Made by a program: the position numbers and the translations under genes. This document shows, in pieces, positions 16,847 to 40,085 of a DNA stretch of 40,085 nucleotides; position 1 is the stretch's first letter, and every line of letters begins with the position of its first letter. The stretch covers positions 1 to 40,085 of the forward strand of contig QPMI01000333.1 in assembly GCA_004431415.1 (NCBI GenBank), written 5' to 3'. Source of the DNA: Cyanophora paradoxa CCMP329. Taxonomy: Eukaryota; Plantae; Glaucophyta. A model generated the notes under the pieces. That model made no database searches. It was given only the letters and a program-made list of their open reading frames with translations, and was not told where the DNA came from.

Positions 16847-16884
<38 letters not shown>

Positions 16885-19020: not shown

Positions 19021-22000
19021 CGAGCTCCCGTGATCCATTGCGCTTCGGGCGGCCCTTAGCCAGCGGAAGCGGCACCGCGGAGTTAGCTAAGCTTCGGAAG
19101 CTGTGCAAGAAGCCGTGCCCGGACCACGCCTTTTCGGAGGCCCCGGGCTCCTGCGGTCCAGCTGGCCTCGGCTGGCCCGGGCCTTCGGGCCGGCTAGGTG
19201 GGATGAAGCCCCTTTGGAGGTAGCATTGCACAGCGAGAAGTGAGGAGAAGGCTGTAAAGACGCCATGTGAGTCCACGTCACGCCGCGGGGCCGCCCGCTT
19301 CTGATCTGAAGTCGCCGCGCTGCAGGCGGGCCGCCGTCGGCCAAACTGTGAGGCAGGCCTTCACACGGCGGAAGGAGGAGGATGCATCGCCGAAGAAGAA
19401 GGTGGCGGGGCGCAAGGAGAGCGCGCAGTGCGTCCCCGCGAGGTTGCAAGCTCCTGCTGCGCGTGCCTCGGGGCTCACGCGGCGGCGGCGGCGCCCAGGC
19501 GGCACTCGATCACCCAGCTCATGCACCTCCTGCACGCCTCCGAGCTGGACAAAGCGGACCTGTACGCCTCGGACACCCTCCTCGCCCGCCTCTGGCACTG
19601 GTGGTGCACGGCCCCGCTCGCGCCCCGCCCGCCGCGGGGCCCGAGGTCCGAGGCGCTGCCCCGCGTGCAGGCTGTTCCACAACCACGCGCTGCTGGACCA
19701 CGAGGTTCCGTGGGAGCAGCGCGCCCTCGACTTCTTCCAGGACCCCCACTCCTCCGGCTCCGTCCGCCCCGCCCCGCCCCGCCCCGCGCCGCCCCGCCCC
19801 GCGCCGCCCCTAAGAGCAGCGCAGGCGCTGATGTACGCTTGGGCGACCGGCGCGATGATTCTAGTCTCCATCGCCCTCTTCTGCGCCACGACGGTCCCCG
19901 AGGCGCGCGCGCGCGCCCCCTCGAGGCATCGACCCATGCCAAAGAGATTCGATCCACCCCACAGTTCGAGATGACGGCGGGGCTGGTGGCGCTGGAGGGC
20001 CTGATCACGGTCTTCTTCACGCTGGAGGTGGCCGTCCGCTCCTGGCTGCGGTACCGCGACCGCTCCCTCCGCGCCTTCGCCACCTCGCCCTTCTTCGCCG
20101 TGGACGTCGCCTCCTGCGTCTCGTGGTACCTCGACGTCGGCCTCGACAGCTCCAGCATCGCCCCGCTCCGCATCCTCGTGCGCCCTCCCCCTCCCCCCCC
20201 CCCCCCCCCCCTTCCTAACTTATCTTCACGCGTTTTCTTTTTCGCCGCAGCGCATCCTGCGCCTCTTCCGCTTCGGCTCGTACAACCGGAGCGTCCGCGT
20301 CGCGGTCCGCTGCGTCCTCAGGAGCGGCGACGCCATGCAGGTCCGCGGGGGGTACAGGGAGATCCGCGCGGCTTCCGTGTAGCCCTCCTGACCCTCCCGT
20401 TTCGGCAGGTCACGGGCTTTCTTATGTCTCTCTCCCTCCTGCTCGTGCGCCCCCGTACCCCCTGTCTCTCCCCCCCTGCCCTGAATCGCCCTGCCCCAGT
20501 TCTCCGGGCTCGTCTACACCACCGAGCAAGGCAACCCCTCCCCGTGCGCTCCCCGTACCCCCGTCCCTCTCTCTCTCCCCCCCCCCCCCTCTCACCCCCG
20601 CCCCAGGGTCTACGCCAGCATCCCGCGATCCTTCTGGATCACCGTCAACGGGCTCGCGACCGTGGGGGGGATACAGCGTGCGCCGCGCCTCCCACAGCTT
20701 GGGTCCTCGCCTCCGACTGTAAGGGCCGGCCGGCCGCCCCGCGCAGTGTCGCCGGCGCCGAGCGAGGCGCCCTCTCAGCCCCTCTCCCTCCTCGTTGTCG
20801 GCCTCGTCTGCGTCTCCGGCGTCCTGGTCCGCGTGCCCCGCAAGAGAGCGCGTACCCCCGCATCCCCGATTGATCCCGTACTCCGCCAGGCGTTCGCCCT
20901 CCCGACGGCGATCATCGGGGAGAACTTTGCGGAGGAGCGCGAGCGGATGATTCGCTTCGACGCCGAGCGGCGGGCGCGTACCCCCCGTTGCCTCCCCCCA
21001 CCCAATAGAGAGAACGAAGTCTGACGTACCCCCAGAACCGGTTGGCGGCGCGCTGGGCGCGCCTCTGCTCGGACATGATGATCCAGCTCCAGTACCGGCT
21101 CGCCTTCGCCCCCCGGGTACGACGCAAGGGCGACTACATCCGCATGCGCGTACCCCCGCTCGCTTTCCTCCCTCCGGGGGGTACGCCGCACTTCTTCACA
21201 CGCCTTTTGCCTCAGGTTCCGTGCGGCGGGCAGGCTGATCATAATGCTGGAGAGGAGGCGCCGTGCGGAGCTGGCCGGCCGGCGCGGCTCCGGCAGGCAG
21301 GCCGCGCCCCGCCCCCGTCCCTCTGCTCTGCTCTCTGCCCTGAGCGCCTCCGGCAGCCTCACGACGCGCTCGGCGGGGACGGAGACCAGCCGGGGACCTG
21401 GGGAGACGGCGCGCGTCCTCAGCGAGACGGCGCGTGTGGTCGAGGCGCCCCTGGGGCAGGAGGCTGGCCCCACGGCGCGGGAGAGCCGCGCGGTGCTGAG
21501 GGCCCTGGCGGGGCGGCGCGGGCCGGCCGGGGGCCTCACGGAGCGCGAGATCCGCCGGTGCGGCCCCCGCCCCGGCCTCCGCGCGCGCGCTGGCCGACCT
21601 TCGCTCGTTCGCAGGGAGCGGCGCCGGGACAACGACCTGCGCATCCTGGCGCGGCGCGCGGCCCCCGAGGAGCTCCTCGCGCAGGCCGAGGCGGTGCGGC
21701 CGGGCCCGATCCCGCTCCGTTTGGACCTGACCCCGCCCTCAGATGCGGCGCTGGAGCCTCGCGAGGAACGCGAACGGCGCGGCGCGCGCGTTCGCGGCCG
21801 CCGGAGACGCCCGGCGCGGCCGTGGCGGCGGCGGCGACGGCGAGGGCGGCCTGTACAGAGCAATCACGGCGCCCGTCCGCGCGGCGTGGGCCAAGCGGCC
21901 GCGGCGCGCCTCCCTCTCCTCTCCCGCGCTCGCGCCCCACGGCGCCCCGGCGCCTGCGGCCCTCCCGCCGGCCCAGCCCCCGCGAGCCTCGGCGCGCTGC

Positions 22001-23500
22001 CGGCCGCGCCGGAGGCCGGGATCGAGCTGGCAAGGCGCGGGGACAGCGGCGCCGGGCCGGCGCCCCGCGCCAACCGCCGCGCCTCCCTCCCGTCCCGCCT
22101 CCGGTCCCTCTCTACCGATCCCGCGCCCGAGCACGTACCCCTCCCGGAGCTGGAGGTACCCCCCGCCTCGCCCCGTTCCTCCCCCACTCGCCGGCCTCCC
22201 CCGCCTCCCCCGCCGCCGCCTCGCCTCGCCGGCACGACCCGGTACCCCTCCCCGACCGCGGCCTCTTCAAGCGCCCCCCGCTGGGCGCTGTGCACCCGGA
22301 GCCGCCGCCGTCGCCCCCCCTGCAACCCGCCGGCGGTTGCCCCTTGCAGGCGCCCCCCGAATCGGAGCCGGCGGATCCGAGGGGGCCGGACCCGGCACTC
22401 GCCCGCCCCGCCTCGGCGGGGACCGCCGGCAGGGCGGCCGCCGGCGCCGCCTCCTCCTCGTCCATAGGATCCGCGGGGGCGGCGGCGGCGCCGCGGCGGC
22501 CGCCGGCGGCGCTCCTCGCCTCGGTGCGGGCCTCCTTCCGAGCCTCCTTCAAGGCGGCCCTCGCCGACGCCGCCCCCGCGCCCCGCCCCGCCGCACCCGC
22601 CGCCTCTGCCGTCGCCGTGCCCGGCGCCAAGCGGTCTGTTGGCTTCGGCCTGGGGGCCCCGGCCCCGGAGGCGCCCCCGGAGCAGGCGGCGGGGCGGGTG
22701 AAGCGGACGTGGGGCCCCGGGCAGACGACGCGGCAGGCGAACCGGATGGCGACGGCGCGGCCGGGCCCGCCCTCCTCGCAGCGCCGCGCCAGCGAGTTCC
22801 AGCAGCGCGCCGCCATCCTCGCCCGCTTCGACTCGGTGCCCCGGCTCCCTTCGAGCTTCCTTCCTTGCTCGCCGGCCGACCGGGGCCGGGGCCGGGGCCG
22901 CAGGTGGTGCTGGAGGCTGTGCCGCAGGAGGACGCGATGGCCCCCGCGAGCCTCCTGCGGCAGCTCGCCGGCGCCCTGCGCGAGGCGGCGGAGGCGCAGG
23001 AGGCCGCCTCGGCGCTCGTGGCGGGGACGGCGCGCACGCTCCTCGAGGTCGACGCCGCCGTGCGCGCCCTCCGCGCCGCCCTCGGGCGGCCCCGCCCGCC
23101 CGGCGACGACTCCGAGGAGGGCGAGGGCGGGGGCGACGGCGGGGCGGGCGGGGCTCGGAGCCCGACGTCGTGCTGCTCCCCGCGGGCGCGGCCGGCGACG
23201 CGGTCGCCGTGGCCCTCGCCGGCGGCGGCCCCGGCCCCGGCGGGGCGCCCCTCACGGGCTCCACGGACCCGGGCCCGGGCCCGGGCTCGGGCTCGGGGGA
23301 GCACTCGCTCGGGTCGGCGTCGGCGTCAGCGGCGCTGGAGCCGCCGCCGGGCGCGCCGGGGGCGCCGGGGGCGCGGGGCGGGAGCGCCGGGTCGGGGGCG
23401 ACGGGCTCCGCCCCCGCCACCGGCCGCTCCGCCCGCCGCCACCCGCACCCGCACGCGTATGCGTACGGGCCCGCGGAGCCCGCCTAATCACCCAGCCCAC
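19021..23500 (+). repeat. Segmental duplication, copy 1 (channel gene plus upstream region)
   Basis: Near-identical to about 25947-30450, including introns and upstream sequence. Confidence 0.95.
19265..23487 (+). CDS. 6TM voltage-gated (Kv-fold) cation channel, copy 1, with atypical filter and long low-complexity C-tail
   Basis: S1 WATGAMILVSIALFC; S2 LEGLITVFFTLEVAVR; S3 PFFAVDVASCVSWYL; S4 PLRILRILRLFRF; pore SIPRSFWITVNGLATVGG; S6 GVLAFALPTAIIGENF. The start codon appears split AT|G by intron 19267-19325. Confidence 0.85.
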
Positions 23501-23814: not shown

Positions 23815-25718
23815 TCACGCAAAGTGTGCAAGTTGAATATTTAATGTGGCGGCGGGGAGGGCGGCGAAGAAAGACTCCTCTGCCCGCGCCGTGAGCTCCT
23901 CGAGCCTGTAGTCGAAGATGACCTCGAGGCGGAGGCCGCCGGGGAGGGGCGGGAGGGCCGCCAGCGGCGCGAGGCCGGCGGCGAGGGTCGCTATGTCCTC
24001 CGCGCTGCGGACTCGGAGGCGGAGGACTAGGCGCTCGAGGCGGGGGCAGTTGAGGAGGGCCGCCGAAACACTAGCTACGGCGTCGGCAGGCGCCCCGACC
24101 ATGCTGACGTTGACGCTGCGCAGGATGGGGCCAGCTCCTGCGTTGACCATCTCTGCAATCTCGGGCCCGGGGACTCGGAGGTCGAGGGCCAGGTGGGTGG
24201 GCAGCGGGCCGGCGGCGAGGGCCGCAATGAAAGCGGTGGACGGATCGGTGCCCAATCCCAAGAGGGACAGCTGCAGGACGGAGAGGCGCGGAGCCCGCAG
24301 CAGGCTTCGCAGCCTGCGGCCCAGCGCCCCACCGTGGTTGTCCATGAGAACAACCTGCGCGACGGAAGCTCAGATGTCGCGGGCATCGACATCGCCGCGC
24401 GGGGACGGGCGCACGTAGCCCGTGACGGCCTCGAGCTGCGGCATGCCGGCGAGCGCGCCGAGGTCGTCCGCGGAGAGGCCCGGCACGACCGGGCGCGCAT
24501 ACCCCTTCCTCCATGGGTCTACATCCCTGCCCGAGAGGTTGGAATTGCATAGTGGAAGGAGGGTACGGCGGCCCGCGCACTCGACGTGGAGCTCGCGCAG
24601 GGATCGCGCCAGGGGGGTACCGGCGATCTCGTCGAGGCGCATGTTGCCCTGGCTCGGCAGCTCAGGTAAGAGGCACGGTAAGCTGCAGGGCGGCGATGTT
24701 TCCAACCTGAAGGCGACCCCTGGGGCCGAGGCGCAGGACGAGCCGGTCCAGGCGGAGGAGCCCGAGCCGCCCAAGGACTCCGGGACGCTCTGCAGTGTAA
24801 CAGAGTTGCAGGCAGCGCAGCGCGGGGAGGCGAGCCGCGATGGCTGCCGCCGTGCCGGCGCTCAGCGGCAGATCGGGCAGCAGGAGGGACCGCAGCCCGG
24901 CGAGCGGCGCCAGGAGTGCCGCCGGTATCTCCAGAACGGCTCCTGGAATGGAGATTAAAAGCTCGTGGTCTTGGACGCTGCCAGAGCTGTGCAGCTCAAG
25001 CTCGAGCTCCTGCAGCGGGCTGGCCGCCCCGCCCGGCGCCAGCGCGGCGAGCACGTCGGCGACGCGCTGACCGAAGATTTGATCTCCGGCGTCGCCCTGC
25101 AAGAGCCGCTCCGCCCCATGCGAGTAGGCGAAATTGACGCGCACGCTCCTGCAGCGCCCTGCCAGGGCGGCGAGTTGGCGGAGCTGCTGCTCCGCTCTCC
25201 CGCCGCCGCTGGAGGGCTTCCATTCGCACAGGACGCTGACGCTGAGCTCGCTGCCGTTGAGCCGCCCCTCGCGCACCAGCCGCTCCAAGCTGTCGAGTGC
25301 CTCCGTCCGCATGGCGTCCAAGTCCAGCTTCGCGCCGTCGAAGGCCGTGCCCTCGACGGCATCGCTGAGCGCTCGGCTCACCTCCCGCACACAGAACGCC
25401 TCCTTGAGAGACAGGAACTGCAAGATCCTGCGAGGACAGTGAGCTCGAGCGCAGCGCGCGGATGGGAGAGCGCGGATGGGAGAATGTGGTTGTTGCTCGG
25501 CACCTCGACAGAAGGCCGCCCGGCAGGCGCTCGAGCGAGAGCTCGGTTGCTTCCTGGACAATTGCAGCTGCGGGCGACGGCAGGCCTGACGTACGCGTGG
25601 GCCAGAATGTGAGCGGCAGCCGCTGAGCACAGGCGCGTGCGCGTGCGCGGCTCAAGCTCTTACCGTCTTCGACCTCCTCCTTCGCGCGCTTCGAAGGCCG
25701 CTCCGAGCTCGCCGCCAT
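23815..25718 (-). CDS. F-box/LRR-like protein, paralog A
   Basis: MAASSERPSKRAKEE..., spliced F-box SLERLPGGLLSR|ILQFLSLKEAFCVREVSRALSDAV, then LxxLxL repeats. TGA at 23817-23815. Confidence 0.8.
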
Positions 25719-25946
25719 ATGCATTCGCCAACAAAGCGGCCAATTCGGGCGCCGGGTACAACGTCCGACTAAACGCGTCGCACCGGAGTCGAACGCGCCT
25801 CTAGACTCGCCGGCGCCAGTACGATGCTCGATCGGACTGGGCCTCGCAAAATCGAGCCCGGCGCCAGCGAAAGTAGCCAGCAGAGGATCCGGCGCAGGAG
25901 CGCGTGTCCCTCCGCTAGAGCTCGGGGCGGGTCTGCAGACCCGCCC

Positions 25947-28900
25947 CGAGCTCTGCAGATCCATTGCGCTTCGGGCGGCCCTGAGCCAGCGGAAGCGGCA
26001 CCGCTGAGTTAGCTAAGCTTCGGAAGCCGTGCAAGAAGCCGTGCCCGGACCACGCCTTTTCGGAGGCCCCGGGCTCCTGCGGTCCAGCTGGCCTCGGCTG
26101 GCCCGGGCCTTCGGGCCGGCTAGGTGGGATGAAGCCCCTTTGGAGGTAGCATTGCACAGCGAGAAGTGAGGAGAAGGCTGTAAAGACGCCATGTGAGTCC
26201 ACGTCACGCCGCGGGGCCGCCCGCTTCTGATCTGAAGTCGCCGCGCTGCAGGCGGGCCGCCGTCGGTCAAACTGTGAGGCAGGCCTTCACGCGGCGGAAT
26301 GAGGAGCATGCATCGCCGAAGAAGAAGGTGGCGGGGCGCAAGGAGAGCGCGCAGTGCGTCCCCGCGAGGTTGCAAGCTCCTGCTGCGCGTGCCTCGGGGC
26401 TCACGCGGCGGCGGCGGCGCCCAGGCGGCACTCGATCACGCAGCTCATGCACCTCCTGCACGCCTCCGAGCTGGACAAAGCGGACCTGTACGCCTCGGAC
26501 ACCCTCCTCGCCCGCCTCTGGCATTGGTGGTGCGCGGCCCCGCTCGCGCCCCGCCCGCCGCGGGGCCCGAGGTCCGAGGCGCTGCCCGGCGTGCAGGCTG
26601 TTCCACAACCACGCGCTTCTGGACCACGAGATACCCTGGGAGCAGCGCGCCCTCGACTTCTTCCAGGACCCCCACTCCTCCGGCTCCGTCCGCCCCGCCC
26701 CGCCCCGCCCCGCCCCGCCCCTAAGAGCAGCGCAGGCGATGATGTACGCTTGGGCGACCGGCGCGATGATCCTAGTCTCCATCGCCCTCTTCTGCGCCAC
26801 GACCGTCCCCGAGGCGCGCGCGCGCGCCCCGTTCCATCTCATCTACCCCTCCCAAAGAGATTCGATCCACCCCACAGTTCGAGATGACGGCGGGGCTGGT
26901 GGCGCTGGAGGGCCTGATCACGGTCTTCTTCACGCTGGAGGTGGCCGTCCGCTCCTGGCTGCGGCACCGCGACCGCTCCCTCCGCGCCTTCGCGGCCTCG
27001 CCCTTCTTCGCCGTCGACGTCGCCTCCTGCGTCTCGTGGTACCTCGACGTCGGCCTCAGCAGCTCCAGCATCGCCCCGCTCCGCATCCTCGTGCGCCCCC
27101 CCCCCCCTCCCCCCCCCCCCCCTTCCTAACTTATCTTCACCCGTTTTCTTTTTCGCCGCAGCGCATCCTGCGCCTCTTCAGGTTCGGCTCGTACAACCGG
27201 AGCGTCCGCGTCGCGGTCCGCTGCGTCCTCAGGAGCGGCGACGCCATGCAGGTCCGCGGGGGGTACAGGGAGATCCGCGCGGCTTCCGTGTAGCCCTCCT
27301 GACCCTCCCGTTTCGGCAGGTCACGGGCTTTCTTATGTCCCTCTCCCTCCTGCTCGTGCGCTCCCGTACCCCCTGTCTCTCCCCCCCCTGCCCTGAATCG
27401 CCCCGCCCCAGTTCTACACCACCGAGCAAGGCAACCCCTCCCCGTGCGCTCCCCGTACCCCCGTCCCTCTCCCCCCCCCCTCTCACCCCCGCCCCAGGGT
27501 CTACGCCAGCATCCCGCGATCCTTCTGGATCACCGTCAACGGGCTCGCGACCGTGGGGGGGATACAGCGTGCGTCGCCTCCCGCAGCTCCGGGCTCTCGC
27601 CCCCGATCCTAAGGCCGCCCGCCCCGCGCAGTGTCGCCGGCGCCGAGCGAGGCGCCCTCTCAGCCCCTCTCCCTCCTCGTTGTCGGCCTCGTCTGCGTCT
27701 CCGGCGTCCTGGTCCGCGTGCCCCGCAAGAGAGCGCGTACCCCCGCATCCCCGATTGATCCCGTACTCCGCCAGGCGTTCGCCCTCCCGACGGCGATCAT
27801 CGGGGAGAACTTTGCGGAGGAGCGCGAGCGGATGATTCGGTTCGACGCCGAGCGGCGGGCGCGTACCCCCCGTTGCCTCCCCCCACCCAATAGAGAGAAC
27901 GAAGTCTGACGTACCCCCAGAACCGGTTGGCGGCGCGCTGGGCGCGCCTCTGCTCGGACATGATGATCCAGCTCCAGTACCGGCTCGTCTTCGCCCCCCG
28001 GGTACGACGCAAGGGCGACTACATCCGCATGCGCGTACCCCCGCTCGCTTTCCTCCCTCCGGGGGGTACGCCGCACTTCCTCACACGCCTTTTGCCTCAG
28101 GTTCCGTGCGGCGGGCAGGCTGATCATAATGCTGGAGAGGAGGCGCCGTGCGGAGCTGGCCGGCCGGCGCGGCTCCGGCAGGCAGGCCGCGCCCCGCCCC
28201 CGTCCCTCTGCTCTGCTCTCTGCCCTGAGCGCCTCCGGCAGCCTCACGACGCGCTCGGCGGGGACGGAGACCAGCCGGGGACCTGGGGAGACGGCGCGCG
28301 TCCTCAGCGAGACGGCGCGTGTGGTCGAGGCGCCCCTGGGGCAGGAGGCTGGCCCCACGGCGCGGGAGAGCGCGCGGTGCTGAGGGCCCTGGCGGGGCGG
28401 CGCGGGCCGGCCGGGGGCCTCACGGAGCGCGAGATCCGCCGGTGCGGCCCCCGGCCCGGCCTCCCCGCGCGCGCGCTGGCCGACCCTTGTTCGCCCGCAG
28501 GGAGCGGCGCCGGGACAACGACCTGCGCATCCTCGCGCGGCGGGCCGCCCCGAGGAGCTCCTCGCGCAGGCCGAGGCGGTGCGGCCGGGCACGATCCCGC
28601 TCCGTTTGGACCTGACCCCGCCCTCAGATGCGGCGCTGGAGCCTCGCGAGGAACGCGAACGGCGCGGCGCGCGCGTTCGCGGCCGCCGGGGACGCCAGGC
28701 GCGGCCGCGGCGGCGGCGGCGAGGGCGAGGGCGGCCTGTACAGAGCAATCACGGCGCCCGTCCGCGCGGCGTGGGCCAAGCGGCCGCGGCGCGCCTCCCT
28801 CTCCTCTCCCGCGCTCGCGCCCCGCGGCGCCCCGGCCCCCGCCGCCCTCCCGCCGGCCCAGCCCCCCGCGAGCCTCGGCGCGCTGCCGGCCGCGCCGGAG

Positions 28901-30450
28901 GCCGGCATCGAGCTGGCGAGGCGCGGGGACAGCGGCGCCGGGCCCGCGCCCCGCGCCAACCGCCGCGCCTCCCTCCCGTCCCGCCTCCGGTCCCTCTCTA
29001 CCGATCCCGCGCCCGAGCGCGTACCCCTCCCGGAGCTGGAGGTACCCCCCCGCCTCGCCCCGTTCCTCCCCCACTCGCCGGCCTCCCCCGCCTCCCCCGC
29101 CGCCGCCTCGCCCCGCCGGCACGACGCCGTACCCCTCGCCGACCGCGGCCTCTTCAAGCGCCCCTCGCTGGGCGCTGTGCACCCGGAGCCGCCGCCCTCG
29201 CCCCCCCTCGAACCCGCCGGCAGCGGCCCCTTGGAGGCGCTCCCCGAATCGGAGCCGGCGGATCCGAAGGTGCTCGACCCGCCGCCCGCCCGCCCCGCCT
29301 CGGCGGGGACCGCCGGCAGGGCGGCCGCCGGCGTCGCCTCCTCCTCGTCCATAGGACCCGCGGGGGCGGCGGCGGCGCCGCGGCGGCCGCCGGCGGCGCT
29401 CCTCGCCTCGGTGCGGGCCTCGTTCCGAGCCTCCTTCAAGGCGGCCCTCGCCGACGCCGCCCCCGCCCCCCGCCCCGCCGCACCCGCCGCCGCCGTTGCC
29501 GCGCCCGGCGCCAAGCGGTCCGTGGGCTTCGGCCCGGGGACCCCGGCCCCGGAGGCGCCCCTCGAGCCGGCGGCGCTCTCGCCTGCGCGGGTGAAGCGGA
29601 CGTGGGGCCCCGGGCAGACGACGCGGCAGGCGAACCGGGCGGCGACGGCGCGGCTGGGCCCGCCCTCCTCGCAGCGCCGCGCGGGCGAGTTCCAGCAGCG
29701 CGCCGCCATCCTCGCCCGCTTCGACTCGGTGCCCGGGCTCGTTTCGCGCTTCCTTCCTTGCTCGCCGGCCGACCGGGGCCGGGGCCGGGGGCGCAGGTGG
29801 TGCTGGAGGCTGTGCCGCGGGAGGACGCGATGGCCCCCGCGAGCCTCCTCCGGCAGCTCGCCGGCGCCCTCCGCGAGGCGGCCGAGGCGCAGGACGCCGC
29901 CTCGGCGCTCGTCGCGGGGACGGCGCGCACGCTCCTCGAGGTCGACGCCGCCGTGCGCGCCCTCCGCGCCGCCCTCGGCCGGCCCCGCCCGCCCGGCGAC
30001 GACTCCGAGGAGGGCGAGGGCGGGGGCGGGGACGGGGCGGGCGGGGGCTCGGAGCCCGACGTCGTGCTGCTCCCCGCGGGCGCGGCCGGCGACGCGGTCG
30101 CGGTGGCCCTCGCCGGCGGCCCGGCGCCGGCGGGGCGCCCCTCACGGGCTCCACGGACCCGGGCCCGGGCCCGGGCTCGGGCTCGGGGAGCACTCGCTCG
30201 GGTCGGCGTCGGCGTCAGCGGCGCTGGAGCCGCCGCCGGGCGCGCCGGGGGCGCCGGGGGCGCGGGGCGGGAGCGTCGGCGTCAGCGGCGCTGGAGCCGC
30301 CGCCGGGCGCGCCGGGGGCGCCGGGGGCGCGGGGCGGGAGCGCCGGGTCGGGGGCGACGGGCTCCGCCCCCGCCACCGGCCGCTCCGCCCGCCGCCACCC
30401 GCACCCGCACGCGCATGCGTACGGGCCCGCCGAGCCCGCATAATCACCTA
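25947..30450 (+). repeat. Segmental duplication, copy 2
   Basis: Near-identical to 19021-23500. Confidence 0.95.
26191..30443 (+). CDS. 6TM voltage-gated cation channel, copy 2 (possibly degenerating)
   Basis: Same exons as copy 1, but with a 12-nt deletion in S5 (about 27414), a 67-bp tandem duplication at 30207-30340 and several 1-nt indels in the tail. Confidence 0.75.
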
Positions 30451-30680
30451 ACTAGTTCTACCCGGCATCTCTCTTCGGCTCCACTCGGCATCTCTTAAGC
30501 TTGTTGAATTAATTTATTGAACCAGCCGCTGCGCATGCATTCGCCTTTAAGCTTCAGAAGATTACATCTTAGAGCTGAATTGAGCACGTGCGAGCAATAT
30601 GACAACGGACGCGACATACATACACAAAATTAAAAGGATGAAATGAATTAAATTCAATGAAAAAGTCGAACTGTCCTTTC

Positions 30681-32611
30681 TTAGCTTTCCCCGCCGTTGA
30701 TGTCGAGTGCGGCGGCGGGGAGGGCGGCGGAGAGGGACTCCTTCGCGAACTGCTCATGCGAACCGAGCACTTCGACCTCGAGGCGGAGGCCGCCGGGGAG
30801 GGGCGGGAGGGCCGCCAGCGGGGCGAAGCCGGCGGCGAGGGCCGCGATGTCCTCCGCGCTGCGGACTGCGGCGCGGAGGACGAGGCTCTCGAGGCGGGGG
30901 CAGCGGAGGAGGGCCGCCGAAACTGCAGCTGCAGCGCCGGCAGACGACGAGTACAAGTCGACGTCGACGTTGCGCAGAACGGGGCCGGCTCCTGCGTCGA
31001 CGATCTGTGCAATCTCGAACGGGGAGACTCGGAGATCGAGGGCCAGGCGGGAGGGCAGGGGGCCGGCGGCGAGGGCGGCGGCGAGGACCGCGCTGAAAGC
31101 GGCGGACCAACCGCCGCCTAAGAGGGACAGCTGCAGGACGGAGAGGCGCGGGGCCCGCAGCAGGCTCTGCAAGCCGCGGCTGACCGCCCCACCGATGTCT
31201 TCCAGGAAACGAACCTGCGTGGGGGCCGCTCAGAGGTCGCGGGGGGTGGGGGGGGGGGTACGGGCGCACTAAGCCCGCGACGGCCTCGAGCCGCGGCATG
31301 TCGGACAGCGCGTGGAGGTCGTCCGCGGAGAGGCGCGGCCCGGGCGGGCTCCCGAATTGTGGTCCTAGCCCTCTGTCCGAGCAGTTGGCCATGGCCACCG
31401 AATAGGGGGGGGGGGGAGAGGGGGGGAGGGGGGTAGACCCGGCTACGCACTCGAGGCGGAGCTCGCGGAGGGAGCGCCCCAGGGGGGTACCGGAGAGCTC
31501 GGCGAGGCCCACGCCGGAGTCGTCGCCCTGTTTCGGGACTCACGTCTGAGACTCACTTTCGAAACTCTCTTGGAAAGGTGAGGGCACCCACCTGGAGGCC
31601 GGGAGCTGTGCGCAGGACGAGCCGCTCCAAGCAGAGGGGCCCAAGCCGCCTGAGGACTCCGCGCTGATCTTCTCCGTAGAAAAGCTGAAGGCTGCGCAGC
31701 GTGGGGAGGCGGGCCGCGATGGCTGCCGCCGTGCCGACGCTCAGGGGCAGATCGGGCAACAGGAGGGCCCGAAGCTTCGAGAACGGCGCCAGGAGCTCCG
31801 CCGGTATCTCCAGGACGCCGGACCCTAACGCTTGCTGGCAGAACGCTTGCTCGCTGTTGCCGTGCAGCTGGAGCTCCTGCAGCGGCCCGGCCGCCCCGCC
31901 CGGCGCTAGCGCGGCGAGCACGTCGGCGACGCGCTGACCGACGATGTGCTCTCTTCCGTGGCGCTGGACAAGCTGCTTCACATCGTACGGCTCCGCAAAA
32001 TTGACGTGCACGCTCCTGCAGCGCCCCGCCAGCGCCGCGAGAAGGCGGAGCGGCTGGGCGCCGGCGCCGATCGCGAGGCTGGAGGGCGCCCATTCGCACT
32101 CGACGCTGACGCTGAGCTCGCTGCCCTTGAGCCGACCGTTGCGCACCAGCCGCTCGAGTGCGTCGAGTTTCCAGGTCACCCTCAGCCGCTCCAGTACGTC
32201 GAGCTCCTCCGTGCGCATGTCGTCCAGGTCCAGCTTCGCGCCGTCGAAGGCGGTGCCCTCGACGGCGTCGCGGAGCGCTCGGCTCACCTCCCGCACTCGG
32301 AACGCCTCCTTCAGCGGCAGGAGCTGCAAGATCCTGCGAGGCCCGTGAGCTCGAGCGCTGGCGTGGATCGAGCGGGCGAGGGGAAGAAGAAGCGGGCGGG
32401 CTAGGCACCTCGACAGCAGGTCGCCCGGCAGCTGCTCGAGCGAGAGCCCGGTTGCGTCCGGGGCATTGGAAGCTGTCGGTGGCGGTGACCCTGCCGTGGG
32501 CGAGTGAGATTGCGAGCAGCAGCACGGGCGCGTGCACATGCGCGGTTCAAAGCTCGCACCGTCCTCGAGCTCCGCTGTTGCGCGCTTTGAAGGCCGCTCC
32601 GAGCTCGCCAT
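30681..32611 (-). CDS. F-box/LRR-like protein, paralog B
   Basis: MASSERPSKRATAELED..., SLEQLPGDLLSR|ILQLLPLKEAFRVREVSRALRDAV. Same 5' intron positions as paralog A. TAA at 30683-30681. Confidence 0.8.
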
Positions 32612-33419
32612 TCGTCCAATTTCGCCGCAGTCACCGGGTACGATGTCGACGCCCGGAGTCGAGCCCGGCCAGGATCTGGGCCCTGCATGCGGTGCTAGCT
32701 GTGCGTGATGCACGGCATGTCGCGCGATGCACGGCATGATCCTCGGAAGGATCGAGCGCGGCTCCTTCGGGGCTCCCGTCCGACGGTCCTGCGCCCATTC
32801 GGCCTGTCAAGGTGTTCGATTGACCCAGGCGCAGTGGTCATGGCCATGGCCACGGCATGGTGCGCGTGCGCCAGAGGTGGCGCCCGGTAGGCGCGCGCGC
32901 GCGCGCGGCAGCTGCCGACGTCGACGCCGACGAGCTTGAGCTTGAAGTCGACGGGACTTGGCGAGAACAGAGAGCGGCAGATCGCGAACTGCAGCCTCGA
33001 CACGCGCTCGGCTTGGACGGAGATCTAGACGACCCACTGATCATGAGCCGGCTCTTAGCGCTAGCGAGACGCGTACGGTGCGCGCGGCGCCGCGGCCGCG
33101 GGCCGGGCGACCCATGCGCCGAGGCGGTGCGCCGCGCCGCGCCGCGCACAGACCGGCCCGACGTCGACCCGCTTCGCTCGCATCCGATGATCTGACTAGT
33201 ACTCCGCCCCCACAGGCGCGGCGTTTGCGGCCACTAGGGGACGCTTGCGCCCTCCCGCCCCTCCTCCATGGCCAGGTCGATGGTGATGTCCTCCCGCGGC
33301 CGGGCCCCGTCGACGTCCTGCGTCCTCGAAGCCGCCCCGTCCTTCCCGTCCCCCGGCGCTGCGTCCGGATCCCGCCGCTCCCTCTCGAGCCCCGCGGAGG
33401 CTCTCCCCGAGCCGGGCTC

Positions 33420-33650
33420 CCCTCCGCCCCGCCCTCCGCCGGCCCGGCGGGGCACCCCCCGCGGGCACGACGGACTCGCCGGGGGCGCGGGGCGGCAGCG
33501 CCGGGTCGGGGGCGGCGGGCTCCGCCCCCGCCACCCGGTGTGACCGGCCCCTCGGCCCGCCCGGCCGCCACGCGAAGACGCGTCGCCCCTGGAGCAGGAA
33601 ACAGCTAGGGCCCTGAGGGATCGTCGCCTACTGCCAAGTCATTGAATCTT
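33420..33650 (+). pseudogene. Remnant of a third channel copy (3' tail and 3' flank)
   Basis: 33481-33575 matches 23366-23445 (PGARGGSAGSGAxGSAPAT). CAAGTCATTGAATCT at 33635 is identical to 23534. No TM exons lie upstream. Confidence 0.6.
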
Positions 33651-33816
33651 TCTTAGCTGTCTAGCGCTGCGGCAGTCGGGCCCAGGCTTGACCCCAGCGG
33701 CCATGCATAAGCAGCGGCGGACGCGTGCGTAGGCACTCGCTAATGTAAGCGAAGATTTCAGCGCCGACCTGAGGTGCAGCTGAGGACTGCGCGCGCGCGT
33801 GATGCCTAAGGCCCAT

Positions 33817-35739
33817 CTAAGCGGCGCGGACGGCGAGCTCAAGGGCGGCGGCGGGGAGGGCGGAGGAGAGGGCCGCCCGTGCCCGCGCCGCCAGTTCCTC
33901 GCGCTGCACTTCCCTCGCGGCGATCTCGAGGAGGAAGCCGCCGGGGAGGGGCGGGAGGGCCGCGAGCGGGGAAAGGCGGGCGGCGAGGTCCGCGACGTCG
34001 CCCGCGCTGCGGACTTCGGCGCGGATGACGAGGCGCTGCAGGCGGGCACAGCGGAGAAGGGCCGCGAGGCAAGCTGCGCGCAGCGGATGCCTAGGAGGGG
34101 CAAGAGGCCAGCCGCGCTCCGAGGGGCTGGAGTACGGGAGATCGACCTCGACGACGCGGAGGAGGGGGCCGGCGGTCGCGGCGATCGCCTCGAGGTCCGA
34201 AGCGGCGCGACCGCTGAGGCGCAGGTCGAGGGCGAGGTGGGCGGGCAGCGGGCCGGCGAGGAGGGCGGCGGCGAGGGCGGCGGAGGCGTCGAGGGCGGCG
34301 ACGGAGAGCTGGAGGGCGGCCAGGAGCGGGGCCCGAAGGAGGACCGCGAGGTCGCGGGAGTCCAACCAGTCGAATTCGACCTGCGCGGGCGCGGGCGAGG
34401 CGCGGGGGGCACCCTTGACTCAGCTTTTATGGCGGTCGACGTCGCGGCGGGAGCGGGGGGTCCTTCAGCTGGGCGGGCGGGCGCACGTAGCCCGTGACGG
34501 CCTCGAGCTGGGGCATGCCGGCGAGGGCCCGGAGGTCACTCGCTGAGAGCTGCGGCCGCGAGCGGCTCCCCTCAAGCCCCCTGCCCGAGCTCGAGCAGTC
34601 AGCGCCCGCAGCCGGAAGCCTAAGCCTAAGGGGGTACACCGGCCCGCGCACTCGATGCGGAGCTCGCGCAGGGAGTTCGCCAGGGGGGTATCCCAGAGCT
34701 CAGCGAGGCCCAAGTCCTGTTGTGAATTCGAAAGCTCAGTCGGGAAATTTCTCCGCGAGTCAAGGGGGCGCCCACCGGGAGGGGAGCTGTGTGTAAGATG
34801 AGCCGCTCCAAGCAGAGAGGACCGAGCCGCCTGAGGACTTCGGGTCGTGCCGCGCTGTAGCAGGCCTGAAGGCAGCGGAGCGCGGGGAGGCGGGCCGCGA
34901 TGGCTGCCGCCGTGCGGACGGTCAGGGGCGTGGTCGGCGGCAGGCGGAGGGCCCGCAGCCGGGAGAAGGGAGCCAGGCGATCCTCCGGCAAGTCGAGGAC
35001 TGTATGGGGCTCGAGGTCGCCGGTGCTGAGCAGATCGAGCTCCTGCAGCGGGCCGGGCGCCCCGCCAGGCGCCAGCGCGTCGAACGCGTCGACGACGTGC
35101 CAGCGGAAAACTCGTTCCGCTGAGTTCGAGAAGTTGAATTTGACGCGAACGCTCCTGCAGCGCCCCGCCAGCGCCGCGAGCAACGATACTGGCTGCGCGC
35201 CGAGGATGGAAATCGGTTCCTCGAGCTTTTCTGAACACTCGATGCTGACGCTGAGGTCGCTGCCCTTGAGCCGCCCCTCGCGAATCAGCCGCTGCAGTCT
35301 GTTCAGCGCGTCCTTCAAATCTGTGATCGCCGCCGGTTTGAACAGGGCGTGCAGCTGCCCGCCGTCAAAGGTCGTGCCCTCCACGGCGTCGCGGAGTGCT
35401 CGGCTCACGCGCCGGGCCCGGAACGCCTCTTTCAGCGGCAATAGCTGCAAGATTCTGCGAGCGAGGCGCGTGAGCTCGAGCGCCGACGTGGATCGCGGAT
35501 CGAGGTGACTGCTCCCGTGGATCGGTACCTTGACAGCAGGTCGCCCGGCAGGCGCTCAAGCGCGCTCTTGGTTTCCTCTGGAGCATTTAAAGCAGCAGGG
35601 AGCGGCGATCCTGCGGTGAGCGCGACGAGTCAGAATGTGAGCGGCAACACGGGAGTGAGCGCGTGCGCGGCACGACGCCCGCACCATCTTTGAGCTCCGC
35701 CCGCGCGCGCTTCGATGGCCGCTCCGAGCTCGCCATCAT
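33817..35739 (-). CDS. F-box/LRR-like protein, paralog C
   Basis: MMASSERPSKRARAELKD..., ALERLPGDLLSR|ILQLLPLKEAFRARRVSRALRDAV, then LRR-like repeats. TAG at 33819-33817. Confidence 0.8.
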
Positions 35740-35904
35740 TCCTAGCTCAAGCTCGAGCTCGCCGGGTACAGGTTCACGGGAGCCGCACCAGTACGCGCGC
35801 GGCGGACCAGTACGGGGCGCACCAGTACGCCTAGCGAGCGCCTGGAACTTCATGATCAAAACGCGCGCGTGCGGCCGCGGGGCGCCGGCCGCGGCGCTAA
35901 CGCG

Positions 35905-35970
35905 GACGTCGACGTCGACGCGGACGTCGACGCGTACGTACGCGTCCGGCCGTCGGACGCGTCCGACGGT
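35905..35970. repeat. Cluster of perfect palindromes
   Basis: CGTCGACGTCGACG (35907-35920), GACGCGTACGTACGCGTC (35929-35946) and CCGTCGGACGCGTCCGACGG (35950-35969). Confidence 0.85.
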
Positions 35971-36082
35971 CAACGCGAATATATGTTGGTCCGCGTATGA
36001 TGGACCACATGCACAGAGATCTGGAGCGCGAGGGTGCAGATGCGCGTGCGATGGCCTAGGCCCACAGCTGCAGATTGCGGGT

Positions 36083-37932
36083 CTAGATCTCGAGGAAGAA
36101 CACGCGCGCGTCGACGGGGGCGGCGGGGAGGGCGGAGGCGAGGGCGCCCCGGGCGCGCGCGGCGAGGGCCCGGGCGCGCTCCCTCTGCCGAATGTGCACG
36201 AGGAGCTCGAGGCGTAGCTTGGCGCCGCTGGGGCCGGGGCGGGGCGGGAGGGCGGCGAGCGGGGCGAGGCCGGCGGCGAGGCGGGCGAGGCCGGCGCCGG
36301 CGACGCAGGCCTCCGTGGCGTGGAGGGCGAGCCGCTCGAGGCGCGGGGAGGCGAGGAGGGCGGCGGCGAGGGCGGGCGGGACGGCGGCCGCCTCCGCCTG
36401 CTCGGGCACTCCAGCGCGAGGCCGCGGAGGAGCGGCCCGGCGGCGGCGGCGAGCGCCGGCAGCGCCGGCGCGGCGGGGTCGGCGACGCGGAGGTCGAGGG
36501 TCTGGACGGTGGGCGGCGGGGCGGCGGCGAGGGCGGCGGCGAGGGCTGTGAGGGTGAGGGGCTCGCCGAGGGCGAGCTGCACGGCGGCGAGGCGCGGGGC
36601 CCGCAGCAGGCGCCCGATCGTGAGCTGCGTGATGGCCGGCCGCCCCGTGCGAATCTGCAGGGGCCGGGGATTCGCATGCATAGAGGGGAGGGGAGGGGGG
36701 GGGGGGGGGGGGGGCGCACGGAGGGGTAGCCCACAACGCGCTCCAGCTGGGGCAGGTGGGCCAGGGCGCTCAGATCGGCTTCGTGGAGGAGAAACGGCAC
36801 CGGGCCGTTCTTGGCCCGCGGCCTGCCGGCGGGGCTTGCAACTCTGGCGAAGTTCGACGGGAGGGGGGTACGGCAGCGCACTCGAAGCGAAGCTCGCGGA
36901 GCGAGTCTCCCAGGGGGGTACTGGGGAGAACGGAGAGACGCAGAACGTCCTGCCAGGCCAAAGTCAGGTACGAGGGAAGAGGAAGGAGCGCCCTCCAAGG
37001 GGGTACCATGGCCCGAGAGTCTCTGGGGTAGAGGACGATTCGCTCGAGGCGGAGAGGAACGATCCGGGCCAGACACATCGCTCCGCAGCACAGCTGCAAG
37101 CAGCGCAGCGCGGGGAGGCGGGCCGCGATGGCTGCCGCCGAGGCAACGCTTGGGCACACGTTGGGCGGCAGGCGGAGGGCCCGCAGCCCGGCGATCGGTG
37201 CGAGCCGCTCCTCCGGAATCTCCAGAGCACGACGCAGGTGGTCCCACCGGCCACTGGTGCTGAGCTCCCCACGCTGGTAGACGGTGCTGAGCAGCTCGAG
37301 CTCCTGCAGAGGGCCGGGCGCCCCGCCCGGCGCCAGCGCGCCGAGCACGTCGGCGACGTGCCGCCGGAAGAGCTGCTCCGCCGAGTCGGAGAAGAGGAAT
37401 TTGACGCGCACGCTCCTGCAGCGCCCCGCCAGAGCCGCGAGAAGACGGATGCTGCAGCTGGAGAGCTCCTCCGCACACTCGACGCTGACGCTGAGGTCGC
37501 CGCCCTTGAGCCTACCGTCGCGCACTAGCTGCTCTAATCTGCTGAGCGCCACGCCCCACTGCTCCTCCGCCCGACACAGGACGCCCAGCTTCCCGCCGTC
37601 GAAAGTCGCGCCCTCGACGGCGTCCCGAAGCGCTCGGCTCACGCGCCGAGCGCGGAACGCATCCTGTAGCGGCAAGAACTGCACGACCCTGCGCGGCGCG
37701 TGACCTCGTGGGCGGCGTAATCGGCGTGGCCGCTCGCACCTCAAATGGAGTTCGCTGGGCAGTCTCTCGAACAAGCTGGCGGTTGCCTCCCGAGCATGCA
37801 AAGTTGCAGACGACGTGCCTGCGCATGCGATGGGCGAGAGAAAAGCGAACGTTATCGTACGCATGCGCGCGTGCAGCGCACGACCCCCGCACCATCTTTG
37901 TGCTTCGAGCTGCGTTTCGAGCTCGGCTTCAT
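36083..37932 (-). CDS. F-box/LRR-like protein, paralog D
   Basis: MKPSSKRSSKHKD G|..., LFERLPSELHLR|VVQFLPLQDAFRARRVSRALRDAV. Same intron phases as A-C. One apparent frame slip near 36405. Confidence 0.78.
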
Positions 37933-38126
37933 TCGCCTGCGGCTGCATTCGCCAAATTTCGTCTCGCCGCCGGGTACACGCTCGACTGAAAACGGGCGCC
38001 GCTGGAATCGAGCCCGGCCGGCGCGAGTGGCCACCAACGGGCGAAAAAGCTAGCAGCTGCCACAGCGGCGCAGCCAGCAGAGGATCCGGCGCTGCGTCTC
38101 TAGGTGCGCAGCAGCGGTGCGCCGCG

Positions 38127-40085
38127 ATGCACGGCGCGTCGTTCGGCTCGGCGTCGGTCGGCGCATGGAGCGCGGCTCCCTCGGGGCCTGCAGCGGCGTC
38201 CGGAGGGGCGCCTTTCATGATCAGCTGCCTGCCCGACGAGATCCTCCGGCAAGTGCTCCGCTGCCTCCTGATCTCCCAGAGCCTCGTCCCGGCCCGGTGC
38301 GTACTGGCGCTCGGCGCGCGCGCACGCCCGTTCAGCCTGTCATCGAGTTCGATCGCTCACGCCTCGTCCCGCGCTCCCCGCCCGGCCGCAGGCTGGTGTG
38401 CAAGAGGTGGAAAGTGGTTGCCGACGAGCTGCTGCCCCTCTCGCGTTTCCGCAACGCCGTGAGTCCTCTCAAGCTCTCTGCTCTCCGCGCGCCGGATCCG
38501 CTGCTGCAAGCGCTGACCTCGAGCTCGCGCCGCCGGCGGGCGCAGCTGGAGGCGTTCTTGACGGAGGGCCCCGGCTCGGAGGTGGACCGGAGGCTGGCGG
38601 ACTTCGTCGAGCGGGAGGCGAGCGCGCCGGAGCGCCTCATACGCCTGCTGGACCGCGCCCCGGGCTGGGCCGTGCCGGAGCGCCTCCTGCCCGACTTCGA
38701 CGCGCGCCTCGCCGGCTCGGCCGCGGGCGGGCGCGACGAGGACGCGGCAAGGCGGCGAGGGGCCGCGCGGGCGGTCGCCGCCTGGGTGCTGGGACGGCCC
38801 GCCGGGGGTCGCGGGGCCGCCCCGGCGAGTGCGCCGCGCTCGGCCTCTTCTGCGGGCGCGCCGGCGACACCCGGCAGCTCCTCGCAGCCATCGAGGGCCA
38901 CGCCAGACCCGCCGTAGCGGTGCACGGCCCCTTTCGCGTCCCGGACCAGCCCCGCGCGCTTCTCCGATCCGACGGGCGTGCCGCAGGGCGAGGCGGACAC
39001 GCACTTCGGGCGGCTGGCCGCGCTCGAGTTCGGAGCGGCGCTCGCCGTCCTCCTCATGTCCCCCCGCTACGCCCACGAATTCTCCGAGCAGGGTCCGCCC
39101 GTGCCGTCCGCCCGCCTCTGCTCGGGGCCCGCGCCAGACGCCGCCGGCAGCGCACGCGCTCCTGGAGGCGGTGCGGGCGCTCGAGGCGGAGCACGGCGGC
39201 GCGGGGCGGGCGGAGGGGGCGGCCGCGGACCAAGAGGGCCTCACCGCCGAGCAGCGCGCCATCGTCGACACTGACGTGCCCCGCGGCGAGCTCCTGAAGG
39301 TGCTCTAAATCCCCACTGCGCTTCCTGCTCGCACTTGGTGAGGAACGGGCCTGCGCCGGCCGCGCCCGCGAGCAGGCCAACGCGTTTGCTGGGACGGGCA
39401 AGACGACAGTAATCACGGCGTTCGCGAGGAAGCGCCCGGACAATAGATTTCTGTACGTCTGCTACAACAGGCGCGTCAAGTAGCGTAACGACACATTAAT
39501 ATTTAAATTGTGTTATCGATTTGCGAGAACTGAATTCGAAAACGGCGCCCGGCCGCGATCGCAGCTCCACTGCAGAGGAGGCACTCAGGCGCTTCGGCCT
39601 CATAGACGACGACGAGAGCGACAAGAAGGACGACAAAGACAAGAAGGACGACAAGAAGGACGACGACAAGGAGAAAGCTGCGAAGAGGCTGGAAAACGTC
39701 GATGTGCGCTTTCCGCGCGCTCCACCCGTCTGCGAATTCGAGCCGACCGTGCCGAACGCAGGTGAGGACGACGCATTCGCTAGCGATGGAAGCGGTCGGG
39801 CGCCCGCTCGCGAACGCTGGCAAGCTGAAGAATGATCTCAACGTGAAGAACGTGCGATGCTTTCTCGAGTCGAGCGGCCACTTAAACGACGTTCGCCTCC
39901 CCAAGCAACGCGTGCGCTGCAGCTGCCGTGCCCCCCCCCCCCCCCGCCTCTCTAGATTTCCCGTCCCGCCGCACCCCAGCCGACGCCGGCTGTCTGGATC
40001 CTCAGGACAAGCAGTTCGCGCGGGCGCGCGCCGTGAAGGAGACAGTCGTCGCCTTCATGGCCTCGGCCGGCGATGAGATCGGGGT
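38127..40085 (+). CDS. FBH1: F-box DNA helicase 1-like (F-box + UvrD/SF1 helicase), 5' part only
   Basis: F-box ISCLPDEILRQVLRCL...LVCKRWKVV; Q motif LTAEQRAIV; Walker A AFAGTGKTT; motif Ia FLYVCYN; Ib RTTHSLA. Continues beyond the window; start codon approximate. Confidence 0.88.

Follow-up and report, generated by a model that had tools for sequence, protein, structure and literature searches.

F-box proteins of the animal FBXL type (FBXL2, FBXL17 and SKP2), which belong to SCF ligases, carry an N-terminal F-box followed directly by a curved beta-alpha solenoid of leucine-rich repeats (LRRs). In plant TIR1, COI1 and MAX2/D3, the pocket for ligand and degron is formed in part by long intra-repeat loops at the top rim of the solenoid. 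In other LRR repertoires, the plant NLRs and RLPs and the lamprey VLRs, hypervariability falls on the strand residues that are exposed on the concave face. Nematodes and plants possess fast-turnover, lineage-specific and partly tandem F-box expansions, in which the F-box is conserved and the substrate side varies more (studies on such families include PMC8665587 and PMC3030570).

Positions 23815–37932 of the window (the whole stretch of 40,085 nucleotides analysed here) contain four minus-strand F-box/LRR paralogues of Cyanophora paradoxa. They are interpreted, with a probability of roughly 0.78, as old tandem members of a Cyanophora-specific FBXL-type subfamily, the loops of which drift under weak constraint without visible selection-driven diversification. 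No published description of this subfamily was found in the literature; the current study adds curated exon maps for this glaucophyte-specific F-box/LRR subfamily, so far annotated only automatically, and assigns it a fold.

Gene copies, neighbours and age

By spliced mapping, the four copies match the public EukProt models tig00001384_g8557, g8559, g8560 and g8561 (P0005, P0001, P0006 and P0011, respectively) residue for residue (Table 1). Copy 3 has six exons, at positions homologous to those in copies 1 and 2, and copy 4 has seven in the public model. Introns are 51–106 nt long across the four genes (54–78 nt in copy 1, GT..AG throughout), and intron positions and long ORFs are all retained across the four copies. 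The exact splice sites and expression rest on automatic BRAKER/Augustus annotation, and the Cyanophora annotation needs curation according to its own authors (PMC6704402). A search of the protein database with a 201-residue piece of P0001 found no transcript-derived fragments, and the F-box/LRR genes of the window were not found in the available portion of the PMC6704402 supplements.

Table 1. Positions of F-box/LRR genes, their parts and neighbouring units in the window
Feature	Position	Strand	Basis or remark
Copy 1 (g8557, P0005, 525 aa)	23815–25718	-	Exact spliced mapping
Copy 1, six exons	25664–25718, 25504–25585, 24707–25427, 24581–24648, 24415–24526, 23815–24354	-	P0005 mapping
Copy 2 (g8559, P0001, 529 aa)	30681–32611	-	Exact spliced mapping
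Copy 2, six exons	32560–32611, 32409–32490, 31592–32333, 31451–31527, 31270–31372, 30681–31214	-	P0001 mapping
Copy 3 (g8560, P0006, 512 aa)	33817–35739	-	Exact spliced mapping
Copy 4 (g8561, P0011, 484 aa as annotated)	36083–37932	-	Exact spliced mapping
Annotated 'intron' of copy 4, 89 nt	36398–36486	-	Intron table and three-frame translation against paralogues
F-box coding region, copy 2 (residues 35–71)	32255–32440	-	Split by 75-nt intron 32334–32408
F-box coding regions, other copies	25349–25535, 35376–35560, 37610–37771	-	Same intron-split arrangement
Variable segment after LRR strand 2, copy 2 (residues 169–178)	31934–31963	-	Inside exon 3
Homologues in copies 1, 3 and 4	25067–25096, 35097–35102, 37358–37363	-	
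Variable segment after LRR strand 3, copy 2 (residues 205–216)	31820–31855	-	Inside exon 3
Homologues in copies 1, 3 and 4	24941–24988, 35004–35021, 37232–37282	-	
Two 21-nt direct repeats (90 % alike) with 15 nt of filler between	32147–32203	-	Repeat search, spacing 36
Fifth, distant F-box/LRR gene (g8552, P0023), same Cyanophora superfamily	4590–6272	+	Profile E-value 3.9e-16
Unit A1: Kv-type channel gene (g8556) and GC-rich tail	19021–23492	+	Self-BLAST, global alignment
Near-identical twin of unit A1	25947–30448		Between copies 1 and 2

A preliminary description of this DNA regarded the genes as a tandem array. The four copies are clustered but not contiguous, copies 1 and 2 being separated by a Kv-type channel gene. 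Comparison of this interposed unit with unit A1 gives 95 % over 4415 columns by self-BLAST, then 98 % in the last 176, with 3.3 % mismatches in a global alignment. The twin has a weak Ion_trans match, and g8556 is listed as Shal-like in a supplement of PMC6704402. F-box genes also alternate with other genes (g6236, g6238 and g6240) on tig00001007.

Paralogue dS among the window copies is 0.5–1.35, and intron identity between copies is near that of shuffled sequence, indicating that the copies are old and not the product of a recent burst. Intron divergence was rejected as a neutral yardstick for the loops because identity between introns has already fallen close to the random level; it gives an age signal only. 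On the tree, the window copies interleave with copies of tig00001007 and tig00000802, copy 4 grouping with tig00000802_g4287 (support 94/94). The subfamily has at least 11 members, was seen only in Cyanophora in the searches made here, and is nested in a large superfamily of which the sampled members are almost all from Cyanophora. This superfamily includes the distant gene elsewhere in the window, for which tblastn pieces of P0023 show 100 % identity at 4590–5459 and 5982–6272 (F-box-like E-value 1.5e-4).

F-box and predicted LRR fold

Once spliced, P0001 matches the Pfam F-box at 26.8 bits over profile positions 1–36, against a cut-off of 20.5, while the unspliced ORFs score 12.8–18.8 bits and fall under it. 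The uninterrupted ORF originally described through the F-box is incorrect; an intron of 51–76 nt splits the F-box and had been read straight through. Likewise, the fifth conserved block of that description is present, but its last two residues are a translated splice donor, identical in the four copies. All 11 subfamily members match the F-box family (PF00646/PF12937 test, best E 2.5e-7), and only two of them match a curated Pfam LRR model (LRR_14 or LRR_At5g56370).

The AlphaFold model, built on copy 2 (P0001), has a pLDDT of 75.8. The F-box is predicted as three helices (residues 40–48, 52–58 and 63–71), N-terminal to an LRR part in which fourteen strands alternate with helices over residues 119–527. 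The C-terminal half has pLDDT mostly above 85, and confidence is low at residues 161–167 and 206–215. In the VIA structure comparison, the best match is FBXL2–SKP1 (Z 18.5, rmsd 4.9 Å, 369/389 residues aligned), the alignment spanning model residues 32–499, with its first pair at residue 32 of the model and residue 9 of the chain; FBXL17 follows with Z 16.5, and the LRR domains of FBXL, ribonuclease-inhibitor and NLR proteins give Z 14–18. The top Foldseek matches are COI1, D3/MAX2, FBXL2 and TIR1; the plant receptors among them have E about 3e-8 to 1e-7, low TM-scores of 0.3–0.35 and identity of 12–16 %. No sequence-level match to any solved chain was found.

The spliced F-box score and the matches of the predicted fold to FBXL2, FBXL17, COI1, TIR1 and D3 agree with the F-box/LRR identity proposed earlier, and support the assignment of the four putative products to the kind of F-box plus LRR protein that acts as an SCF substrate receptor. 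The basic patch conserved in the short N-terminal tail, which exon 1 encodes, may serve as a nuclear-import signal. By homology, the canonical F-box would dock SKP1 in an SCF ubiquitin ligase, and about 13 irregular beta-alpha LRR units would form a solenoid holding the substrate.

Variable segments and their constraint

The near-invariant blocks noted in the preliminary description are real and occur in all four copies, and alignments confirm that the post-strand segments vary among copies in sequence as well as in length. There is a nine-codon length gap between copies 1/2 and copies 3/4 in the segment after strand 2; in the P0001 model, the low-confidence residues 161–167 lie directly upstream of it. 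The segment after strand 3 is 6 to 17 codons long across the four copies, and the AT-rich example 24940–24975 given earlier falls within it in copy 1. In addition, the direct repeats and filler of copy 2 form a 12-codon insert in the linker between F-box and LRR, which is present only in this copy among the four aligned and is a local duplication with filler.

The variable, AT-richer segments might instead be unannotated short introns or gene-model errors, so that the hypervariability would be artefactual. The introns are short, one of them in frame within the ORFs first described, the annotation is automatic and includes one dubious intron in copy 4, and three of the 13 longer variable runs touch predicted exon boundaries (columns 296–307, 328–338 and 368–379). 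However, the segments originally singled out sit inside exon 3, where the length differences among the four copies are all in frame, stop-free and in whole codons. Variable segments show codon periodicity (GC3 0.80–0.81 versus GC2 0.53), which the introns, with a flat GC of 0.70, do not. No splice-like candidates confined to a variable segment were found, and each in-frame GT..AG candidate with good consensus would delete invariant blocks too. The variable, indel-rich segments are therefore true coding sequence, as first presented, and an intronic origin is highly improbable.

Their lower GC content is also borne out. Pooled variable columns have GC 0.68 and GC3 0.81, compared with 0.766 and 0.926 in conserved columns, and the stretches cited as AT-richer (GC 0.47, 0.46 and 0.53) lie below the 5th percentile, the 36-nt window mean being 0.70–0.73. 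This is attributed to amino-acid make-up and to weaker codon bias at less constrained sites: segments without the Ala/Gly/Pro/Arg-rich conserved motifs would have lower GC as a by-product, and less constrained codons would show a weaker GC-ending bias. Here, variable, AT-richer loops on a conserved scaffold are what uneven constraint normally leaves in a genome so rich in GC, and they do not mark an immune-type diversifier, which matters for how similar-looking arrays are interpreted.

Selection was assessed on the four window coding sequences by codon-model maximum likelihood (GY94, codon-frequency-aware). Nei–Gojobori dN/dS values of 0.72–0.91 are misleading because GC3 is about 0.85, and were replaced by these estimates. 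Whole-gene omega is 0.29–0.48 in all pairs, copy 4 included, and omega = 1 is rejected (2dlnL 26–67). In the F-box omega is 0.17, and in conserved columns it is 0.16–0.23 with dS of 0.5–0.8, which indicates that selection, rather than recent gene conversion, maintains the conserved blocks. Structure-defined strand-to-helix loops give 0.58. In the copy 1/2 pair, the low-identity columns give 1.12, which is not significant and is biased upward by choosing columns for low identity; the C-terminal half gives about 0.8 and the best post-hoc window, codons 421–500, gives 1.9, also not significant. Omega was significantly above 1 in no partition (loops about 0.6–1.1), with dS near saturation in five of the six pairs and four sequences giving low power for positive selection at single sites. 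Some adaptive change in the C-terminal repeats of copies 1/2 is conceivable.

Variation lies mostly in the strand-to-helix loops and therefore, by LRR geometry, on one rim of the solenoid. Column entropy across 11 paralogues is 0.63 in helix-to-strand loops, 1.13 in strands, 1.20 in helices and 1.86 in strand-to-helix loops, where indels touch 47 % of positions. For non-hydrophobic columns, exposure being judged by residue type and not from coordinates, the values are 1.34 in strands, 1.64 in helices and 1.93 in strand-to-helix loops. The concave strand face varies less than the helix surface.

The preliminary description proposed a possible substrate-diversified ubiquitin defence repertoire. 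On such a view the rim loops would be substrate contacts under diversifying selection, directed against pathogen or other fast-changing proteins, as has been suggested for nematode and plant F-box expansions. The concentration of variation and indels in loops on one rim is consistent with this, as are a loop dN of 0.62 in the youngest pair (2.5 times the 0.24–0.25 in strands and helices), the omega of about 0.8–1.9 in the copy 1/2 C-terminal repeats, and the clustering of the genes within a large lineage-specific superfamily. A site-class test of M2a against M1a on the four sequences is also formally significant (2dlnL 68.8). However, the M2a fit was rejected as evidence for positive selection, since it is degenerate (omega 83, tree length inflated roughly tenfold) and many of the sites it picks fall in the indel-rich variable runs or next to them, where alignment is uncertain. 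Omega does not significantly exceed 1 even in low-identity columns, exposed strands are less variable than exposed helices, and the paralogues are old and interleaved with a second cluster on another contig. We know of no link between this family and infection. A diversifying repertoire is thus unlikely; neither diversifying selection nor a defence role is supported, and the loops change no faster than neutral drift. Equally doubtful is a broader version, in which the eleven paralogues and the wider superfamily would form a nuclear SCF receptor repertoire, with rim loops/C-terminal repeats contacting substrate and specificities diversified by indels and adaptive change, independently of the plant and nematode expansions. 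Adaptive loop evolution, if true, would represent a third independent diversification of an F-box repertoire, in a deep branch of the plant lineage, and a ubiquitin-based recognition system in a glaucophyte.

Alternatively, the array may be decaying, with redundant copies heading towards pseudogenes and the variable loops marking early loss of function. Copy 4 needs the atypical 89-nt 'intron' across a change of frame, and loses one LRR unit in the gene model. This 'intron' has an unusual donor and 87 % GC and, translated in frame, supplies the continuation of the LRR unit that copy 4 lacks but the paralogues have; it is probably a patch over a frameshift. An omega near 0.8 for the C-terminal half of copies 1/2 points the same way, and a plant F-box study refers in its title to genomic drift (PMC3030570). 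However, the change of frame in copy 4 could be a long-read assembly error, and the whole-gene constraint in all pairs, the retained introns and ORFs and the low F-box omega make decay quite improbable.

On the preferred reading, that of old subfamily members with drifting loops, purifying selection holds the turns from helix to strand, the hydrophobic core and a large part of the concave sheet, while strand-exit loops on one rim and the C-terminal repeats are weakly constrained. These parts drift via substitutions and short indels that keep the frame, one or more of which arose as a local duplication plus filler. Paralogues that differ in their loops may well bind different substrates.

Comparison with described F-box and LRR families

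The Cyanophora model has the order of parts seen in animal FBXL proteins, and the match to FBXL2–SKP1 covers both its F-box and its LRR part. Unlike those of animal FBXL proteins, its repeats are irregular and Ala/Pro/Gly-rich with long loops, and the family, seen only in Cyanophora in the searches made, lacks a sequence match to solved chains. The rim loops of TIR1, COI1 and D3 are the same kind of place as that in which the Cyanophora family varies, but the TM-scores and identities to these proteins are low, and nothing suggests small-molecule sensing.

The family resembles the nematode and plant F-box expansions (PMC8665587, PMC3030570) in being lineage-specific and partly tandem and in varying more on the substrate side than in the conserved F-box. 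It differs from them in that its copies are old, omega is never significantly above 1, and the substrate side is LRR and not of the FBA, FTH or kelch type. Like the plant NLR/RLP and lamprey VLR repertoires, it consists of tandem LRR genes with repeats of varying length; in contrast to them, its concave strand residues vary less than the helix surface, and it is the loops that vary.

Gene models, fold and breadth of the family

The largest ORF of copy 2 matched 11 proteins in a word-based protein search, all of them EukProt Cyanophora paradoxa entries with names of the form tig0000..._g....; four of these are the window copies, which map residue for residue after splicing. An exact look-up bore out this source, and the mapping makes the window either contig tig00001384 itself or DNA identical to it. 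The preliminary description of a tandem array stands as regards the four paralogs, but not as an uninterrupted run, as a Kv-type channel gene separates copies 1 and 2. There are six exons per gene (the public model of copy 4 has a seventh), and the introns are 51–106 nt long, at homologous positions, GT..AG throughout and in most cases with a GTGCG-type donor. These short introns and the high GC (approximately 70% across the window) are consistent with the 67.6% GC and mean intron of 86 bp reported for the genome (PMC6704402).

Features in the window: four F-box/LRR copies, a distant relative and channel units
Feature	Position	Strand	Remarks
g8552 (tig00001384_g8552, P0023)	4590-6272	+	distant F-box/LRR relative, same Cyanophora superfamily
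Kv-type channel unit (g8556)	19021-23492	+	flanks copy 1
Copy 1 (P0005, tig00001384_g8557)	23815-25718	minus	residue-for-residue spliced mapping
Kv-type channel unit, twin of g8556	25947-30448	+	between copies 1 and 2, other flank of copy 1
Copy 2 (P0001, tig00001384_g8559)	30681-32611	minus	residue-for-residue spliced mapping
Relic of channel unit end	33445-33535		adjoins copy 3, 86% identical
Copy 3 (P0006, tig00001384_g8560)	33817-35739	minus	residue-for-residue spliced mapping
Copy 4 (P0011, tig00001384_g8561)	36083-37932	minus	residue-for-residue spliced mapping

The F-box is split in the copies by an intron of 51–76 nt, through which the preliminary description had translated. The unspliced ORFs score 12.8–18.8 bits against the Pfam F-box, compared with 26.8 bits for the spliced protein (cut-off 20.5), and all 11 family members match. 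The final two residues of the supposed block LEAVxGYVRP are the translated donor of intron 5, the first eight bases of which are the same in all four copies. In exon 1, most of the 11 members carry a conserved basic patch, a possible nuclear-import signal by inference.

The published gene models are BRAKER1/Augustus predictions, for which the authors state that further manual curation is needed (PMC6704402). In copy 4, the public model has an additional 89-nt 'intron' (36398-36486, minus) with an atypical donor and 87% GC, the translation of which continues an LRR unit found in the paralogs; here the gene predictor has probably spanned a frameshift, whether a true one or an error of assembly. 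In the public model of P0009 (tig00001007_g6239, outside the window), the latter half of the F-box and the beginning of the linker, present in all other members, are missing, probably through a gene-model error.

An AlphaFold model of copy 2 (input, the 11-member alignment; mean pLDDT 75.8) has three helices in the F-box and one in the linker, as well as 14 strands in alternation with helices. Its top Foldseek matches are COI1, D3/MAX2, FBXL2 and TIR1. On re-alignment, FBXL2-SKP1 gave Z 18.5 over 369 residues (model 32–499, which spans both F-box and LRR), and Z for FBXL17 was 16.5; no sequence match to solved chains was found. The structural matches, together with the F-box, indicate that the family proteins are FBXL-type F-box/LRR proteins as modelled, and this assignment suggests that they bind SKP1.

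When 1.84 billion representatives were searched exhaustively with a profile, 92 proteins had E <= 0.001. Seven family representatives fell below 1e-178, and the next match reached only 1.7e-38. Of 20 further matches looked up, 16 were from Cyanophora and four were environmental or other sequences, two of these being proteins of 2,295–2,545 aa with nine short matched stretches each. Among the Cyanophora matches is g8552, encoded in the window at 4590-6272. Nothing on Cyanophora F-box genes was found in the literature searched; the terms F-box, leucine-rich and ubiquitin do not occur in the genome paper (PMC6704402).

Elsewhere in the window, a plus-strand gene divergent from copy 4 has at its start (about 38220-38300, +) a partial and weak match to the F-box (E 0.028, profile positions 1–16); a downstream ORF in a different frame (38117-38917) may hold the remainder of this candidate motif. 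A stretch of approximately 60–70 nt occurs twice, far apart (3222-3299 and 16812-16886, 82–85% alike).

Coding status of the variable segments

The conserved blocks and length-variable segments of the preliminary description are present in the four copies, and its three AT-richer stretches have a GC of 0.46–0.53 against means of 0.70–0.73. Unannotated introns are not the explanation favoured by codon periodicity, in-frame lengths or the lack of stops. Pooled over the four copies, the variable segments have GC1 0.70, GC2 0.53 and GC3 0.81, a strong codon periodicity, and codons in indel columns are similar (0.71, 0.53 and 0.80); the 21 introns have a GC of 0.70. Length differences in exon 3, a single long exon, are all whole codons, with stops in none of the four copies. 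No in-frame GT..AG candidate with good consensus is confined to a variable segment, all such candidates starting in or deleting invariant blocks. On these sequence grounds the variable segments are read as coding, although for the three of 13 longer runs that touch predicted exon boundaries this rests on predicted splice choices.

The better a column is conserved, the higher its GC3 (0.75 in columns where no two of the four copies agree, 0.91 in invariant ones; Spearman 0.19, p 5e-5); the higher GC of the invariant blocks in the first two codon positions is due to amino-acid make-up. In copy 2, a 21-nt direct repeat and 15 nt of less GC-rich filler (repeat region 32147-32203, minus) account for an in-frame exon insert of 12 codons.

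Age of the copies and of the channel units

The four window copies form no group of their own in the protein tree: copies 1 and 2 cluster with three tig00001007 genes (support 100/100) and copy 4 pairs with tig00000802_g4287 (94/94). Homologous introns of the paralogs resemble one another about as much as shuffled sequences do (mismatch fraction 0.24–0.30 versus 0.30 in shuffles). In contrast, the two 4.4-kb channel units differ at 3.3% of sites (96.7% identical), beside F-box genes saturated at neutral sites (copies 1/2 being the unsaturated pair). This indicates that the channel units were homogenized, or duplicated anew, much later than the divergence of the F-box genes, and points to a recent event in the channel unit alone; fast F-box evolution is not the cause of the contrast. 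The tig00001007 members (g6235, g6237, g6239 and g6241) alternate with three other genes. If these are channel paralogs, the repeated unit would be a channel and F-box pair.

Distribution of variation and selection

Nei–Gojobori dN/dS was 0.72–0.91, ratios that are too high because of the extreme GC3. Codon maximum likelihood (GY94, F3x4 codon frequencies) on the six pairs of the four copies gave whole-gene omega of 0.29–0.48, with omega = 1 rejected in every pair; dS was 0.50 for copies 1/2 and 1.1–1.35 for the others. The F-box had omega 0.17. Conserved columns had omega 0.16–0.23 at dS 0.5–0.8, so that purifying selection, rather than recent conversion, maintains the blocks.

A repertoire diversified for ubiquitin-mediated defence had been proposed, with dN/dS above 1 as its check. 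Strand-to-helix loops, classed from the model independently of conservation, have the highest dN (0.62 versus 0.24–0.25) at omega 0.58. In low-identity columns of copies 1/2, the only unsaturated pair, omega is 1.12 with 2dlnL 0.14; the C-terminal half of this pair is near neutral (0.81), and its best post-hoc window (1.9) is not significant. M2a was favoured over M1a for the four taxa (2dlnL 68.8); this gain needs omega 83 and approximately tenfold inflated branch lengths, and many of the sites lie in or beside indel-rich variable runs. The signal was put down to alignment and saturation artefacts. Rates are thus uneven, an excess over neutrality is shown nowhere, and none of the tests run supports the diversifying or defence reading, which is conceivable at low probability.

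The structural part of the proposal, that the variable segments share one side of the solenoid, is borne out. Column entropy across the 11 paralogs, averaged per model-derived structural class, is 0.63 in helix-to-strand loops (which hold most invariant blocks), 1.13 in strands, 1.20 in helices and 1.86 in strand-to-helix loops, where indels touch 47% of positions. These loops lie on the same rim because the LRR strands are parallel. Low model confidence coincides with variable places (residues 82–89, 128–136, 161–167, 206–215 and 322–326). The pattern is real and was correctly observed, and the family is an ordinary lineage-specific FBXL family. With exposure assigned by residue type, non-hydrophobic columns are better conserved in the strands of the concave face (entropy 1.34) than in the helices (1.64), the opposite of the pattern in classical LRR recognition repertoires.
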